Shown here in pieces: positions 1 through 47,310 of a stretch of DNA of 64,000 bases. The translations under genes were made by a program, and so were the position numbers. The DNA is from Lama guanicoe (lineage: Eukaryota), in contig MU056802.1 of assembly GCA_013239625.1 (NCBI GenBank), forward strand, positions 62,001 through 126,000, given 5' to 3'. The notes below the pieces were generated by a model, which had not been told where the DNA came from, did not search any database, and was given only the letters and a program-made list of their open reading frames with translations. Every line of letters starts with the position of its first letter. Positions within the stretch are counted from its first letter, which is position 1.

Positions 1-1478
1 TTGGGGGAGGGCACAGCTGGGCCACAGCCAGTCCTCACCACTGGGGACCTCCCTGACTTTCACACAGGTGTCCTCTTCTGGTGGCAGTGCCTGGCACACC
101 TCTGCACCTGTTGAGTGATGCTGTGACCTGAGACGCTGGGTTTTACCACACTCGCTCGCAAGCTGAGTCCAAAGGCCCAGGAGCCCGGGGGCTGGCACTG
201 CCACCCTGCTAGGCCAGTCCAGCAGGTCTGCAACCTACTTAGGATGACAAAAGTACACTCAGCCCGGTACAGGCAGGAAGCCCCGCTTCTTGTAACCAGG
301 GCACAGCCTGCCTCAGAAGAGATGGACAGGTGGACCCCAAGGGAGAGAGCCATCGGCCTGTCCTCAGATTAGGCTACGTGCCTAACCCCTGCCACTTCCT
401 CCTTCAACCCCACCCCCAGGCAGAATTCTCTGGAGTAAGAAGGAAAGGTCCTAGAAGCCAGACCGACACTAAGGGCCCCTGTGCAGAACAGGCCAAAGCG
501 GAGAGGTGTGGGTGAGCACGGAGGAGAGGACTGGGGGCAGCGGGCGTGGCTCAGGTCTGGCAGCGCACCGAGGGCAGGAACAGGACAGTGGAGACACTCG
601 TTCCAAGAGTTTTTGTCACCTGCAGGGACAGCACCACCAGGACAGAGCGGTTCCCGCCAGACAAGCAAAGGTCTTGGCCACGGAGGCTGTGGCACCCAGC
701 ACAGCTCTGAAGGCCTCAGGCCTCGCAGAGCCAACACCTTCCCCACCTCTTGGGACCTCAGGGCGAGGGCAGTGCCAGGCCCCCAGTGCCGGCCTGGCAG
801 GACCCTGCGCCCTGGACACAACAGGCCTGTGCAGCAGGACACCTTGTGCTGGGAACACTGAGGCCCCGGGCGTGCTTCCTGGCCCCACACTGAGAGGCGT
901 GGAAGGAACTGGCCTTTCTGAAAGCTCACTTCATTTTAAGCCCTGAGCACCGCCACTGCTTGACACTAGCGCGGGACAGGTGGACAAACGCCTGGTCCCT
1001 CTCACCACAAGGTGAGTCCCAGGCAGCCCCTGGTGCTGGACATGAGAAGTTCTCACCAGGGGGTGCCTCATACGTGGTGATGGAGCTGAGTCCCAGCAGC
1101 AGCCTTGGGGCTCTCAGCCCAGCAAGTGGGCACCAGACCCTTAGGCCAGGCATAGGTCTCCTTTCAAAGGTCAGAAGGGTGAGGCTGGAGCAGGAGGCCC
1201 CTCTGGAGGGCAGCTCAGGAAGGTCTCCCAGGCAGCCAACCCACAGCAAGCTCCTGCCTGAGCCACCAGCCCGGCATGCGCCTTGGCTGGCTGGAGTGGC
1301 CTGGGAAAGCCACGTGCATGACTCCCAGTGGGAAGCCCAACACAAGTGTGCGGCTCCCCTCATCTGCCCCTGGGAGGGGGGGCAGGCTCTGCCAGCTTGA
1401 CGTGGGAGAACCTCGGTCACGTGCCCACGAGGGGCCCACAAAGCCACCAGGACAGTGTAAGGATGAAGAACCACCTGC

Positions 1479-36240: not shown

Positions 36241-36900
36241 CGATGGCCTCTGGGTGGCTGCTTCCCACCTGCTCCTCCTGGTGTTGTCAGGGTCCTTAGG
36301 TGGGAGGTGGGCCCACAGCTCACTGCATGGGAATAGCCCACCCAGGGTGGGCACAAGTATACTGCCGCTCAGCCAGGCACTTTGGTGCTTGATTCTGATG
36401 CGCTGGGGTCCAGCTGTTTGCCCACCTTATACAGGCTCCGCTCTGGCCCCTGCAGCCAAGCAGTGGGAGGCCTGAGGCACCAGGCCAGGGTGCTCCAATC
36501 CACTGGCCCCAAAACAGAGGCCCTGGGCCCTGGGCGGGGAGGGGCGTGGCCCAAGATGGGGTGCCAGTGGGAGTGGAGTCCCCGCCCCTGGGAGGGGAAT
36601 TTTTGTTGGAGAAGTTGGGCGGGCCTACGCACCCTGCCTCCACCTAGAATCGGCTGGCTGGCTGGCAGTCAGTCACTCCCTGACACGCAGATCCCCAAAC
36701 CTGGGGCGGGGCTGGGGCAGATCCTGTTGGGGACAGAACACAGGGCCTAGGAGCTGGCCCGGCAGCTGGGGACCAAGTGAAGTTCACGTTGAGTGAGGCT
36801 CGAAGCCAGGAGGAGGCGGCCATTGCTGTAAGGTCAGTGCCAGACCCTGCCCTAGAGGGCCACACTGAACTTCACAGCCTTAACCACCCCCATCGCAGCC

Positions 36901-37761
36901 CTGGAGTCCCCGCCCACCCATCCTGACTCCTGCCCTGGGGCTGCCACCCCTGAACTGTGCCCTAGGGCCCCCACTCATGGCCCCACTGACCTCAGCTCTG
37001 GGCTCACCAGTCCGCCTTCGGCTTCTCTGGGCCCTGAGCACCTGGATTCACTGTGCCAGGTGCTGGCAGACGACGGGTTGGACAGCAGGGCCCCTGCGAA
37101 CCTCCAGGGTGCCAGGATTCTGGACAGTGAACCCCTGCTGGGGGCAGCAGTCATAGACTGCCCCTGGGCCCCCACAGAGGACGGGGATGAAGACGAGGAG
37201 GAGCAGGCTGGGGAGCAGGGGGAGGAGGAGGAGTGTCCCGTCTGCACAGAGCCCTACCGGTCCGGTGAGCACCAGCTGGCCCTGCTGAACTGCGGTCACA
37301 GCCTGTGTGCAGGCTGCCTGCACCGGCTGCTGGGCGCGGCCCCCAGTGCCGACCTGGGCCGGGTGCGCTGCCCGCTGTGTCGCCAGAAAACACCCATGCT
37401 TGAGTGGGAGATCTGCCGGCTGCAGGAGGAGCTGCTGCAGGCCGACGGGCCCCAGCGCCCCGCGCCCGCTGCTCCCCTCGGGCCCCTCCACGAGAGCCCC
37501 GGGCCCTGGGCCCGCCTAGAGCACCGCTACCAGCTGCACTTCCTGACGAGGCCCCTAGGCGGCCGAGGCTGCCTGCCCTTCCTGCCCTGCCCGCCCTGCC
37601 TGGGTGCCTGGCTCTGGGCCCTGCGGGAACGAGGGCCCTGCGCCCGCCGCATGGCGCTGCTGGGCCTGCTGGCCCTCGAGCTGCTGGGGCTACTGCTCAT
37701 CTTCATGCCGCTCATACTGCTGGGGCTGCTCTTCGTGCTGCTGGACGGCTCCAGCCGCTGA
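36901..37761 (+). CDS. Uncharacterised C3HC4 RING-finger protein with C-terminal transmembrane segment (RNF152/182/183/186/223-like); start codon uncertain
   Basis: Frame open 36856-37761. Acidic tract, then CPVC-x15-CGH-x2-CAGC-x17-CPLC, then a ~31-aa hydrophobic tail. No in-frame ATG before the RING; start given is gccCTGg at 36901. AATAAA at 38554. Confidence 0.8.
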   Translation: MESPPTHPDSCPGAATPELCPRAPTHGPTDLSSGLTSPPSASLGPEHLDSLCQVLADDGLDSRAPANLQGARILDSEPLLGAAVIDCPWAPTEDGDEDEEEQAGEQGEEEECPVCTEPYRSGEHQLALLNCGHSLCAGCLHRLLGAAPSADLGRVRCPLCRQKTPMLEWEICRLQEELLQADGPQRPAPAAPLGPLHESPGPWARLEHRYQLHFLTRPLGGRGCLPFLPCPPCLGAWLWALRERGPCARRMALLGLLALELLGLLLIFMPLILLGLLFVLLDGSSR

Positions 37762-38553
37762 GAAGAGCCCGCCGGGTCTGCCACCAGCACGGCCTGGGCT
37801 TGAGGTAGCCATGGCCACCAACGGATGGGAGGCCCAGACTGGCCCAGGCCCTGGAGCCGTGGGGCCTGATGGCCAGGCTGAAGAACCCAAGGTCGATCAG
37901 GGCACTAACTTTCAACCCAGACCCAAGCCTCGGACCCAGGGCCACCCAGAAGCCTCTGACCCAGCCGGAGACTCCACACTGCCCTGCTGCCCAGACGCTA
38001 GCCAGTGGTGCCTAAGGACAGCACCAGAGGAGGCCTGTGACCAGGGCCCGAAGTGCCCCTCGAGGGACAGGCCCCATGCTGACACTGGGCTGTCCCCGCT
38101 CTCCAGCCTGGCCTGTCTGCAAGAGGGGCACAGACACCGCGGACACAAAAATGAACAGAGGCCTGGGTCAAGTGCTCGGAGTGGGTGGGGCCCTCAGCAG
38201 GCACCTGCCCACGTTCCAGCTGAGAGTCAAGTGTGTGTTCCCTGAAGATCAGGGTAGCCGAGGGGAGGGCCCCTGCTGCACAGGCCCGGCCCACAAAGGG
38301 CCTCCTCTGCCGCCGGGCTGGGGTCCAAGTGGTGGCCCTGAGCAGCCCCAGGGGTGGAGGGGAGTGGCAGCACATGCCCCTCAGCCACAAGGGACCAGGG
38401 CGGGCCCTGGGGCCGAAGGCACCCTCACTCCCCTGCAGCCCCCCATGGCTGAGCCTGGGGCCTTTATTTGAGGGACAGACGCAGTCACAGCACCCCCCTC
38501 GTGGGCTCATTGGTGGCACGCCGAGCCCTGTGCCCGGCACAAGAAATGCTGTC

Positions 38554-38559
38554 AATAAA
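38554..38559 (+). terminator. Polyadenylation signal for the RING-TM gene or a long NDOR1 3' UTR
   Basis: AATAAA. Confidence 0.6.
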
Positions 38560-39326: not shown

Positions 39327-40124
39327 CTACATGATGGAACAGGCAGACAGCGGGTTCCGCACGTGGCAGGTGCACGCGGCCCCACAGTACTGCCGGAAGG
39401 TCTGGTAGCAACTGCCCTCAGGCTCGCCCCCCCACTGGCCACCGGATGGGGCGGTCAGCGCCTCAGGTGGCAGGCGGCTCAGGATGGACGTGTTGACAGC
39501 CAGCGCAGCCAGGCCGTAGTCAGTGAACAGCACAGTCTCACGGCGGCAGGTGGGACAGGAGATGAACTTGTATTTGGGGCAAGACTCGTAGAGAATCTGC
39601 AGGCACTGCTCACACACAGAGTGCAGGCAAGACAGCACGCGGGGCCGCCGCTGAGTGACGTTGTACGTGTGGCCGCAGGTGGGGCACTCGAGAGGCTCAC
39701 CTGCGGCTGATGCCGCTGCTGCTGGGGCCCCTGAGGCAGCAGGGCCAGGCCGAATCACATACTGATTCACGATGACCTCGTCCGCGGGTGCCACTCGGGG
39801 GAAGCCCAGCTCCGCACTGCCCTTGCGGGACCGACGTGGCAGGGGTGGGGTACGGGGTGCCCCTTCCAAGGCAGGCATGTCCCCCCCACATGCCTGGTTG
39901 ACGATGATCTCTGTGTCTGAGGGCCAGGCTCGCTTGGGTGCCAGAGCCGGGGTGGGCCGGGGTGCAGGTGGGAAGCAGGGGGCGGCCGCCTGCAGCTCGG
40001 GGAACTTCTCAGGGTGGACGATCTTCATGGCCTCCATCTTGAGGATGACATGGGGGCCCTTCAGGCAGGACATGAGGAACCCTGGCCAGCCACTGCCCGC
40101 CTCTGGCCCAGGGTCAGCCGGCAT
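39327..40124 (-). CDS. RNF208: RING finger protein 208, single coding exon, 265 aa
   Basis: MPADPGPEAGSGWPGFLMSCLKGPHVILK...CPTCGHTYNVTQRRPRVLSCLHSVCEQC...CPTC...PLSACSIM; ATTAAA on minus at 39181-39186. Confidence 0.95.
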   Translation of the reverse strand: MPADPGPEAGSGWPGFLMSCLKGPHVILKMEAMKIVHPEKFPELQAAAPCFPPAPRPTPALAPKRAWPSDTEIIVNQACGGDMPALEGAPRTPPLPRRSRKGSAELGFPRVAPADEVIVNQYVIRPGPAASGAPAAAASAAGEPLECPTCGHTYNVTQRRPRVLSCLHSVCEQCLQILYESCPKYKFISCPTCRRETVLFTDYGLAALAVNTSILSRLPPEALTAPSGGQWGGEPEGSCYQTFRQYCGAACTCHVRNPLSACSIM

Positions 40125-40746
40125 CCGGCTGTCTCCAGTCAGACTGGGTGTTCGGGTGGATGGGAGAGTTGGGTGTGGCTGGGGGGGAGGGGAGGGGGCA
40201 GCATCCTGGTCCCGCCAGGCCTGGTGGGGACCCTGGCCGCCCTGTGGACTCCTGGGGGTGGCTGGCAAGAACTTGGGGGGAAGGGCCCCACCCAGTGGCC
40301 ACAGTGGCTTCTCTGGTCCAGTCCTAGAAGGAATAGAAAGGGGCGGGGGAGGGGGAGAGGATCGGGCCCAGGGGCTCACCCAGGGTCTCCAGATGCAGAG
40401 GCTGGCGAGGGGGCGTTGGGGGGGGTCCCCCTGCAGCCGAGATCAGCAGTCCCGGGGCCGGGACATCCGGGCAGGCAGGGGCTAGGTGGGCCCCATGGCT
40501 CCAGGACAGGGCGCCCAGGGAAGGCAGCTAGCCTGAGCCCTGGTTGCGGAGGAACCCAGGCCCCAAGCACGGCGGCGGTGGGAGCAGAGGAGAGGCCTGG
40601 ACGAGGCCCGAGCTGCAGGTGAGAGACAGCGTGAGGGCAGCGCCCGGGCCCACCCTCATCCTGCACAAAAGACAGGGCGCCCGACCTCGGGCCCTGACCC
40701 TCGCTGGACTCGGAACCCAGCCCCCTCCCCAACCCCCGCCCCCCAA

Positions 40747-41122
40747 NNNNNNNNNNNNNNNNNNNNNNNNNNNNNNNNNNNNNNNNNNNNNNNNNNNNNN
40801 NNNNNNNNNNNNNNNNNNNNNNNNNNNNNNNNNNNNNNNNNNNNNNNNNNNNNNNNNNNNNNNNNNNNNNNNNNNNNNNNNNNNNNNNNNNNNNNNNNNN
40901 NNNNNNNNNNNNNNNNNNNNNNNNNNNNNNNNNNNNNNNNNNNNNNNNNNNNNNNNNNNNNNNNNNNNNNNNNNNNNNNNNNNNNNNNNNNNNNNNNNNN
41001 NNNNNNNNNNNNNNNNNNNNNNNNNNNNNNNNNNNNNNNNNNNNNNNNNNNNNNNNNNNNNNNNNNNNNNNNNNNNNNNNNNNNNNNNNNNNNNNNNNNN
41101 NNNNNNNNNNNNNNNNNNNNNN
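40747..41122. other. Assembly gap (N run) inside the CpG-rich RNF208 5' region
   Basis: 376 Ns. Confidence 0.99.
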
Positions 41123-42830: not shown

Positions 42831-43964
42831 CACTCTGATCACCTGGCCTCTGGGCCCCGTCTGGTTTGATCCCGCCCTTCCTGGGGGTTCCCCCGCGAGC
42901 TCCACGGGTTAGGGATGTGGGTCCAGGCCGCACGCCACTGCCCCCGTCGCCCCAGAGGGAGCTTACCAGTGCCAGGCCCAAACTCACGTGATCGCATCCA
43001 CTGTCACCCCCGTCTACAGCGACCCTGTATGGCGCAAGCTATGTGCCACCTTACAGATGAAGGTGGGAGGGGGTGCAAGGGCCAAGGACGGGGATGCTGA
43101 GGAGGGACTTGGGGCCCACGAGCCGACCGCGAAGGGAAACCGTAGTTTCTTGTATGAGCTAGAAGCGTCACTTGTGTATGAAGCCCATGTCGCCAATCTT
43201 AAGTACGTTTTATTGGCAAAAGTAAGTAAATCAAACATTTTTTTATCAGTTAAAAAACAGCAAAGCTCCGCGCAGTCTGTTCACAAACACCTTGATCTCT
43301 GCCTGCGAGGTCGAAGCTGTGAGTGACAGTGGGCACCTCTTCCTTCTGCTTCAAAGCAGGGGCTTTGAGGTGTGTGAGTGATGCCCGGGGACCCCAGACG
43401 ACCTGCAGGCCTGGACTCTGTGGACCTGACCCCAGTGACCTGCAATCCAGCAGGGCCAGGACATGCCCCAGATGTGTTGAGTCTGAGTCACCCCGAATGG
43501 CAATGTCCCTCAGAGCCCAAGCCTTGGCCACCACCCATCTGAAAAAGGAAGGGTGGGTGGGCACTGTGCTGGAAGAGCTGGGCCTCCTGGGATCTTGGGA
43601 ACCCTGTCTGGGAGCCCCGCCCATGGCCCCGCCCCTCCCCAGTAGGGAAAAGGCAGCAGCCAGTCCCTCAGCTCACAGACACTGGGACCTGGCCCAGAGG
43701 ACAAGAGGACTCCTTGCTACCATCACCACTTCAGGTGAGTCCTGAGCTGAGGGGCTCCCCCACCCACCCAGGACCAGCTTAGCTGCATCTTCCAGCCTCC
43801 CCCACCCCAACCCAGCTCCATCGCAAGGCACTGCCTCTCAGGGAAGGCAGAGGACCCCTGGGGCACAGCTGGGAGACACTTGCCTCCTTGCACATGCACT
43901 GACACACAGACCTTGAACACTCTTGGCATTTCCACAGCCTCTGCCACCCCTGCCAGGCTGGGCC

Positions 43965-44354
43965 ATGGACCCCCACAACATGATGGTCAAGAACCCATAT
44001 GCCCACATCAGCATCCCGCGGGCTCACCTGAGGCCTGACCTGGGGCAGCAGCTGGAGGCGGCTCCATTCTCCTCAGAGTCGCAGCCTGTGCCTCTGGGGC
44101 CCTGCACCCTGGAACCCGCCAAGGAGGCCCCAGGGTCCAAGGGGGCCAATTCCATCCAGGGCCAGCAGGCCTGGCAGCCACCCGGCAACCCCTGCAGCAG
44201 TGGGCAGCGCCCGGCAGGACTGACATATGCGGGCCTGCCGCCAGTTGGGCACGGCGACGACATCGCTCACCACTGCTGCTGCTGTCCCTGCTGCTCCTGC
44301 TGCCACTGCCCCCGCTTCTGCCGCTGCCACAGCTGCTGCTGCGTCATCTCCTAG
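43965..44354 (+). CDS. CYSRT1: Cysteine-rich tail protein 1, 129 aa
   Basis: [31 protein letters not shown]...[28 protein letters not shown]. Non-coding exon donor at 43734/5, acceptor 43937, AATAAA 44632. Confidence 0.93.

Positions 44355-46767: not shown

Positions 46768-47310
<543 letters not shown>

Follow-up and report, generated by a model that had tools for sequence, protein, structure and literature searches.

Standard annotation systematically misses or truncates genes that are translated from non-AUG codons. To our knowledge, few genes are translated solely from such a codon; EIF4G2 (GUG) and TEAD1 (AUU) are examples of genes translated only or mainly in this way. An open reading frame (ORF) that overlaps POLG starts at CUG (PMC7059407). 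On the protein side, members of the RNF183 family (RNF183, RNF186, RNF182 and RNF152) combine an N-terminal C3HC4 RING domain with one or two C-terminal membrane helices (PMC7313026). Another RING gene, RNF228 (HGNC:55809), has no publications devoted to it and was recently annotated from PhyloCSF and ribosome profiling (Ribo-seq) data (PMC12807706); it is also listed in a human 2q36.1-q36.3 deletion (PMC12549294). Here we describe a RING gene in a 64,000-nucleotide stretch of Lama guanicoe DNA (contig MU056802.1, positions 62,001-126,000), hereafter referred to as the window; all coordinates are window positions. The gene lies directly behind NDOR1 and encodes a putative membrane-anchored ubiquitin ligase, and its translation is proposed to start at a CUG codon.

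The gene occupies a stop-free frame on the plus strand (36856-37761), read by translation as 301 sense codons followed by a TGA terminator (37759-61). An in-frame TAG (36853-36855, plus strand) closes the frame on its 5′ side; at the same place whales and carnivores read Q/R-R-A-T-L. The main phase contains five stops within 110 bases just 5′ of the frame and none inside it; over 36250-37800 the remaining two plus-strand phases are broken by 9 and 14 stops. The DNA of the open stretch is 67% GC, with a distribution by codon position (0.75/0.55/0.72) as in coding DNA. Four ATGs were located near the gene, at 36556, 36977, 37187 and 37396, and only 36556 and 37396 are in phase. The ATG at 36556 is separated from the open frame by five stops, and the first in-frame ATG (37396-37398, plus strand) is found three codons past the last RING cysteine. 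All frames are free of ATG over 418 nucleotides of the leader (36559-36976, plus strand), where a first-order Markov model predicts 3.4 ATGs (P(0) = 0.03). The initial annotation had reported the stop-free frame, the first in-frame ATG behind the RING, a GTG at 37060 directly after a "cag" acceptor, a CTG at 36901 in the context gccCTGg and an out-of-frame ATG at 36977 before a C4 run; every one of these features was located as described.

The translated frame also carries the two protein features named in that annotation. All eight C3HC4 ligands are present (C127, C130, C146, H148, C151, C154, C172 and C175 of the frame) and are invariant in 57 mammalian sequences. The RING domain (37234-37380, plus strand) was matched by Pfam families zf-RING_5 (E value 7.7e-10), zf-C3HC4 (1.9e-5), zf-RING_2 and zf-RING_UBOX, all above cut-offs. 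The long C-terminal hydrophobic segment is a predicted transmembrane helix of about 31 hydrophobic residues (37651-37743, plus strand; hydropathy 2.2-3.0), followed by five residues and the stop. As expected of a tail-anchored protein, it is the single hydrophobic helix and stands within about 30 residues of the C-terminus; the N-terminus is rich in Pro, Ser, Asp and Glu. AlphaFold models the koala orthologue with residues 1-58 as a disordered arm, after which come the RING (60-118; predicted local distance difference test score, pLDDT, of 70-84), an immediately adjoining helix, a pair of short helices and the membrane helix (192-231, pLDDT about 90). A Foldseek search with the RING and helix of this model returned the RINGs of TRIM32, TRIM21 and TRIM25 as best matches, with E values of 4e-4 and weaker. 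As modelled, the koala orthologue has the RING cross-brace fold.

Ahead of the RING, the N-terminal arm contains D-S-E-P-L-L, an acidic dileucine-like motif (37123-37140, plus strand) kept from birds to mammals. The motif fits [DE]xxxL[LI] in mammals, and its E-P-L-L core is retained in birds and turtles; judged by its sequence, it could be an adaptor-binding sorting signal of an endo-lysosomal ligase. A juxtamembrane segment, L-E-H-R-Y-Q...G-C-L-P-F-L-P-C-P-P-C-L (about 37560-37650, plus strand), is likewise conserved from birds to mammals and is covered by no Pfam family. Three to four of its cysteines lie near the membrane helix and could be palmitoylation or metal sites. The protein would consist of a disordered cytosolic N-terminal arm with D-S-E-P-L-L, the RING with its helix, the juxtamembrane segment rich in Cys and a single membrane helix at the C-terminus. 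From this layout we infer membrane topology and ubiquitin ligase activity.

The combination of a RING with a C-terminal membrane helix is what the protein shares with the RNF183 family, and the likeness to RNF152/182/183-type membrane ligases proposed at the outset was borne out by Pfam and hydropathy. In a protein atlas based on language-model similarity the nearest named clusters were RNF183(-like) (0.94), RNF152-like (0.92) and RNF182 (0.88), and automatic names of orthologues include RNF183-like and RNF182. In contrast to the family members, the gene stands at a separate locus, its product carries ahead of the RING a long N-terminal arm that evolves fast, and Pfam found no match to RNF152_C (PF19325) in the window protein. 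Because RNF152_C is unmatched and the comparison with named members is one of language-model similarity, not of alignment, we describe the protein as RNF183-family-like in architecture and not as a proven member. Other labels are in use for its orthologues: NCBI names those of marsupials "RING finger protein 225(-like)" and some others "RNF224-like" or "RNF208-like". RNF225, RNF223 and RNF224 are small RING proteins that have been little studied. These are names given by similarity pipelines, not tested orthology, and the RNF208 and RNF224 ORFs of the window are distinct from the RING gene and have no C-terminal anchor. RNF228 resembles the gene in being of a kind overlooked until lately. It was considered as the human name of the RING gene and rejected: it is located at 2q36, not beside NDOR1, and is therefore a different gene.

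A protein search produced 107 matches, the best of which was a Vicugna pacos "ring finger protein-like, partial" entry with 100% identity. A 201-residue human-labelled entry was among the matches; human-labelled entries P0066 and P0068 were excluded from alignments and scripted analyses. Orthologues were found in all four placental superorders, 10 marsupials, birds, turtles, lizards and alligator; all sequences compared are ORF or gene predictions and are open by construction, an ascertainment that applies to each comparison below. The window protein is 73-77% identical to its counterparts in whales and rhinoceros, and an alignment of 57 mammals contains 52 invariant columns, with very high conservation from the RING to the C-terminus. 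Two metagenome scans returned only unrelated RING matches (L001-L016) and no orthologue. By these comparisons the gene call of the initial annotation holds: the gene, with its RING and membrane anchor at a locus of its own, is real and conserved, and it is the orthologue of an uncharacterised amniote-wide RING gene that NCBI calls "ring finger protein-like".

Some records of this gene are entangled with those of NDOR1. The mouse entries examined are P0177, P0182 and P0184. The full mouse ORF (294 residues), whose first Met falls no earlier than mid-RING, was present on 868 public contigs. UniProt A0A2I3BPW1, labelled mouse Ndor1, is a 141-residue piece of the RING protein with a Met start inside the RING, and Apodemus entries of the gene are filed under NDOR1 like those of mouse. 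In goat, a 1020-residue NCBI model flagged "LOW QUALITY" (P0200) reads NDOR1 straight through into the RING ORF. An NDOR1-RING fusion among cluster members was considered and discarded, the members of 597-601 residues being plain NDOR1 joined via this one goat model. At 90% clustering the model ties plain NDOR1 proteins to the RING cluster, and it can mislead name-based annotation.

The same data bear on the possibility that the window copy, or its N-terminal arm, is untranslated, the copy being a decaying relic or the protein being made only from lineage-specific downstream AUGs, as could apply to primates, canids and sheep. No sequencing run of the species of the window is recorded as RNA, the window protein has unusual residues at near-invariant positions (V129, H228 and M266), and no CpG island was found at the gene when one was looked for (observed/expected CpG ratio 0.2-0.36). 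On the other hand, 301 codons remain open in GC-rich DNA whose other phases are rich in stops, the GC content by codon position is coding-like, the RING ligands and the anchor have all been preserved, the protein is 73-77% identical to those of whales and rhinoceros, and the mouse ORF recurs on several hundred contigs. In addition, small sequencing runs of the species of the window (60-88 million letters) include 93-97% of the words in the 1 kb at this gene, a coverage that random genome sequencing at such depth would not give and that hints at RNA or capture as the source. An untranslated copy or arm is, in our estimation, quite improbable.

We then compared the starts of the orthologous proteins. 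All marsupial orthologues are 232 residues long and begin at an AUG, with M-A-V/M-G-S-Q-E-P; the proteins of birds, turtles and lizards begin with a Met about 150-200 residues ahead of the RING. In 114 of the 121 placental sequences that reach a conserved Leu (Leu16 of the frame) there is no Met from that residue to the RING. NCBI models are flagged "partial" for alpaca, rat, Arvicanthis, Myotis, rhinoceros, armadillo and water buffalo, among others, and the complete placental models have N-termini that are unrelated across orders. Lineage-specific in-frame Mets occur at different places in rabbit, blind mole rat, sheep, hedgehog, canids, primates and lemurs. Thus, as far as the predicted sequences go, placentals are without a conserved AUG start, while marsupials and sauropsids begin at an AUG. 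Marsupials and birds have E-P-L-L within their AUG-started coding sequence, and placentals retain it; the placental protein must therefore begin upstream of 37123.

The 5′ limit of frame conservation was seen in the alignment of 57 sequences. Its columns 1-12 are bimodal, about half of the sequences reading R-A-T-L-T-F-T-A-P and the others E-G-H-x-D-L-H-S-P, which are two frames of the same DNA. The two groups merge 3-4 codons 5′ of Leu16. From this residue onward the columns are unimodal, and the distance from the Leu to the RING, although it takes 25 different lengths (58-111 residues) among 50 sequences, is always in frame. In the window the in-frame TAG stands 16 codons 5′ of Leu16, where relatives carry Gln or Arg, and the ORF behind it is intact. 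Taken together, the position of E-P-L-L, the frame signal and the TAG confine the start to 36856-37123, and the 5′ edge of frame conservation is its most likely site.

The codon at this edge is the CTG of Leu16 (36901-36903, plus strand), a candidate CUG initiation codon in the context gcagccCTGg, with G at both −3 and +4. A coding sequence starting there would comprise 286 codons and a stop (36901-37761, plus strand). The residue is Leu in 47 of 50 sequences (94%). Its neighbours vary: the residue after it can be Gly, Glu or Ala, but the corresponding codons begin with G in 98% of sequences, and the residue before it can be Thr, Ala, Ile, Arg or Val, with codons that begin with a purine in at least 90%. 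Variable neighbours combined with a constant implied −3 purine and +4 G are the pattern expected if Kozak positions, rather than amino acids, were selected. Only three N-terminal columns reach 90% conservation, namely Leu16, Leu63 and Leu95, the last being part of the E-P-L-L motif, and among them both the −3 purine and the +4 G are implied only at Leu16. No other in-frame near-cognate codon before E-P-L-L pairs a good context with conservation; CTG 37063, TTG 37078 and CTG 37120 are not conserved.

Initiation at a different near-cognate codon (ATC 36892, CTG 37027 of Leu58 or CTG 37042 of Leu63), or at several together, has to be weighed against this. At Leu63 conservation reaches 93% and +4 G 100%; goat has Val at this residue, and the sheep RefSeq model has Met. 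The marsupial N-terminus falls near Leu58 in the MAFFT alignment, and the 44 residues from the marsupial start to E-P-L-L are closer to the 37 counted from Leu58 than to the 79 from Leu16. Leu58 and Leu63, however, have a −3 pyrimidine in most species, and in the window scanning ribosomes would meet the out-of-frame ATG 36977, and be intercepted there, before reaching either of them. The frame is moreover kept across many insertions and deletions between Leu16 and Leu58, including a block of 8-9 codons lost in several lineages, which is unexpected for a 5′ untranslated region (UTR). A start at one of these other codons is, in our judgement, unlikely.

Several points weigh against CUG 36901 itself. 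The CTG codon and its −3 and +4 bases were seen in the window DNA only; in the other species the evidence is the Leu and its neighbouring amino acids, taken from predictions whose openness is built in. Leu63 matches Leu16 in conservation, likewise has the +4 G and is replaced by Met in the sheep model. The marsupial start is ambiguous in alignment, falling at the Leu16 block by eye and at the Leu58 block with MAFFT. The NCBI alpaca model removes the CTG by splicing. Finally, no stable hairpin beyond chance was found when one was looked for 3′ of the CTG (z = −0.92). A further candidate observation, the Met at the Leu16 position of opossum M-A-M-G-S, was dropped: nine more marsupials have M-A-V-G-S, their start is Met1, and MAFFT aligns this sequence elsewhere.

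The ATG at 36977 was itself one of the starts put forward in the initial annotation, on the supposition that one C had been lost from the assembly at 36981-84. This ATG (ctcATGg) has a +4 G and the C4 run behind it, and as assembled it opens a phase 1 ORF of 59 codons (36977-37156, plus strand; TAG at 37154-56), in overlap with the N-terminal part of the coding sequence. In whales, rhinoceros, carnivores, pangolins and bats, however, the reading is T-H-G-P-x-D-L-S-S-G-L in the frame of the window; with five orders sharing it, the assembled frame is therefore ancestral. The ATG is missing in horse (T-Y-G), ruminants, primates and rodents, and the conserved ORF extends 25 codons further 5′. An assembly error of this kind is extremely improbable, and the claim of a missing C falls: ATG 36977 is a by-product of Thr-His-Gly codons. 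All sequences that read T-H-G or T-H-D have the out-of-frame ATG, through overlap of these codons.

The remaining proposal was that a spliced upstream exon, either a first exon of the gene itself or an exon of NDOR1, brings in an in-frame AUG through an acceptor near 36898, 36965 or 37059. Splice-site-like sequences do exist in the leader: GTAAG|GTCAGT (36828-36838, plus strand), which ends an exon at 36832 and is the donor of the NCBI alpaca model; a C-rich tract with CAG (36884-36898, plus strand), a putative 3′ splice site located three bases 5′ of the CTG, which keeps the phase when joined to 36832; and the AG (36964-36965, plus strand) used as acceptor by the same 5′-partial alpaca model (P0001), which joins 36832|36966. 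Whale models share a Met-starting first exon. Filing of mouse and Apodemus entries under NDOR1 and the fused low-quality goat model also favour this proposal, and the donor of the penultimate NDOR1 exon (35689, leaving two bases of a codon) is in frame with acceptor 36966, which by phase count would give an NDOR1-RING fusion.

Against it, no upstream coding exon is common to the orders, and the N-termini are unrelated. The region 36559-36976 is free of ATG, and the alpaca model is still without an ATG after its splice and is annotated as partial. The 36832|36899 junction keeps the main phase and reads TAA-GCC-CTG; with TAA before GCC-CTG, no N-terminal extension is possible through it. An acceptor at AG 36897-98 requires a G-starting codon at −1, where most species have Thr, and AG 36964-65, part of an Arg codon in the window, corresponds to a Gly codon in many species; by the amino acids, neither AG is conserved. 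By our own count, the NDOR1 donor is out of frame with 36899 and 37060; every junction phase here is a manual count. In favour of splicing, mouse does have a leader intron: its minor spliced-leader form (P0184, on 12 contigs) has the block "(V)-K-L-T-S-S" joined just 5′ of the Leu, at a junction that the protein reading puts about two codons upstream. This mouse spliced ORF nevertheless has no Met in its 16 upstream codons, and the Leu codon stays in the mRNA. We consider an AUG supplied by an upstream exon doubtful.

Of the three start readings in the initial annotation, CTG 36901 is thus the best supported, by the edge of frame conservation, the 94% Leu and the implied Kozak positions; judged from these sequence features, its chance of being the start is about even. 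Translation would begin at CUG 36901, in a near-perfect Kozak context behind an AUG-free leader, to give a product of 286 residues, and ribosomes scanning past the CUG would be caught by the out-of-frame ATG 36977. The ATG-free leader fits ribosomes that have to reach a weak start. The wider scenario is tentative: the AUG of a tail-anchored RING ligase present throughout amniotes would have disappeared in the ancestor of placentals, with production since then solely from one conserved CUG in a perfect Kozak context. We rate it slightly below an even chance. The gene resembles known non-AUG genes in having a conserved AUG-less ORF and, at the edge of coding conservation, a candidate near-cognate codon whose strong Kozak context is read directly in the window and implied by amino acids elsewhere. 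It differs from them in being known from protein-level comparison alone, and the conserved coding frame found upstream of its first in-frame AUG is likewise a protein-level result from predictions that are open by construction.

No paper on the RING gene was found in a literature search, and no entry for NDOR1, RNF208 or RNF224 was found in the supplements of a survey of conserved non-AUG extensions (PMC9789052). What is new is an uncharacterised membrane-anchored RING ligase; the kind of protein and the non-AUG mechanism are known and are here met in a new gene. Absence of a usable AUG together with a CUG start would explain the truncated, partial or Ndor1-filed models. If the wider scenario is true, an unnamed E3 ligase would join the short list of mammalian genes wholly dependent on non-AUG initiation, and its absence from curated gene sets would be explained: its NCBI models are 5′-partial, its mouse product is filed under Ndor1, and no paper on it was found. 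Once the start codon is confirmed, studies of substrates, localisation and a possible endo-lysosomal role could use the correct protein, and the gene would be a clean natural case in which an AUG was lost but translation retained. Dependence on CUG may also make protein output sensitive to the stringency of initiation (eIF1, eIF5, stress).

Upstream of the frame, four GC boxes were found at 36532-36709 (plus strand), at about 12 times the density of the window (window mean 0.34 per 200 nucleotides). The cluster is a possible TATA-less promoter. Of the features from which the initial annotation suggested a promoter of the gene's own, the GC boxes were confirmed (four, at 36532-36704), and the NF-kB-like GGGGAATTTT fits just 8 of 10 consensus positions by our own reading. 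The leader also contains GTGAAgTTCAC (36777-36787, plus strand), a 5-bp inverted repeat within a block kept in many species, whose ORF calls read V/A-K-F-T there. The repeat could be a promoter or 5′ UTR element.

The NDOR1 stop codon (35914-16) and the AATAAA of NDOR1 (36235) both lie 5′ of the RING frame, in agreement with a gene directly behind NDOR1, and the C-terminus of the window NDOR1 matches goat NDOR1 (P0208). Downstream, ORFs of RNF208 (39327-40379, minus strand), CYSRT1 (43923-44354) and RNF224 (46789-47310) follow, so that the order is NDOR1 - RING gene - RNF208 - CYSRT1 - RNF224. The end of NDOR1 and the placement of these downstream ORFs therefore make the RING gene a separate locus between NDOR1 and RNF208. 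A run of N at about 40550-41100, an assembly gap or masked stretch, is situated just upstream of the minus-strand RNF208 ORF. The next plus-strand AATAAA after the RING frame (38554-38559) is the likely poly(A) signal of the gene. Between the RING gene and RNF208 it converges with a minus-strand AATAAA (38463-38468), and a tail-to-tail overlap between the 3′ UTRs of these genes is possible.

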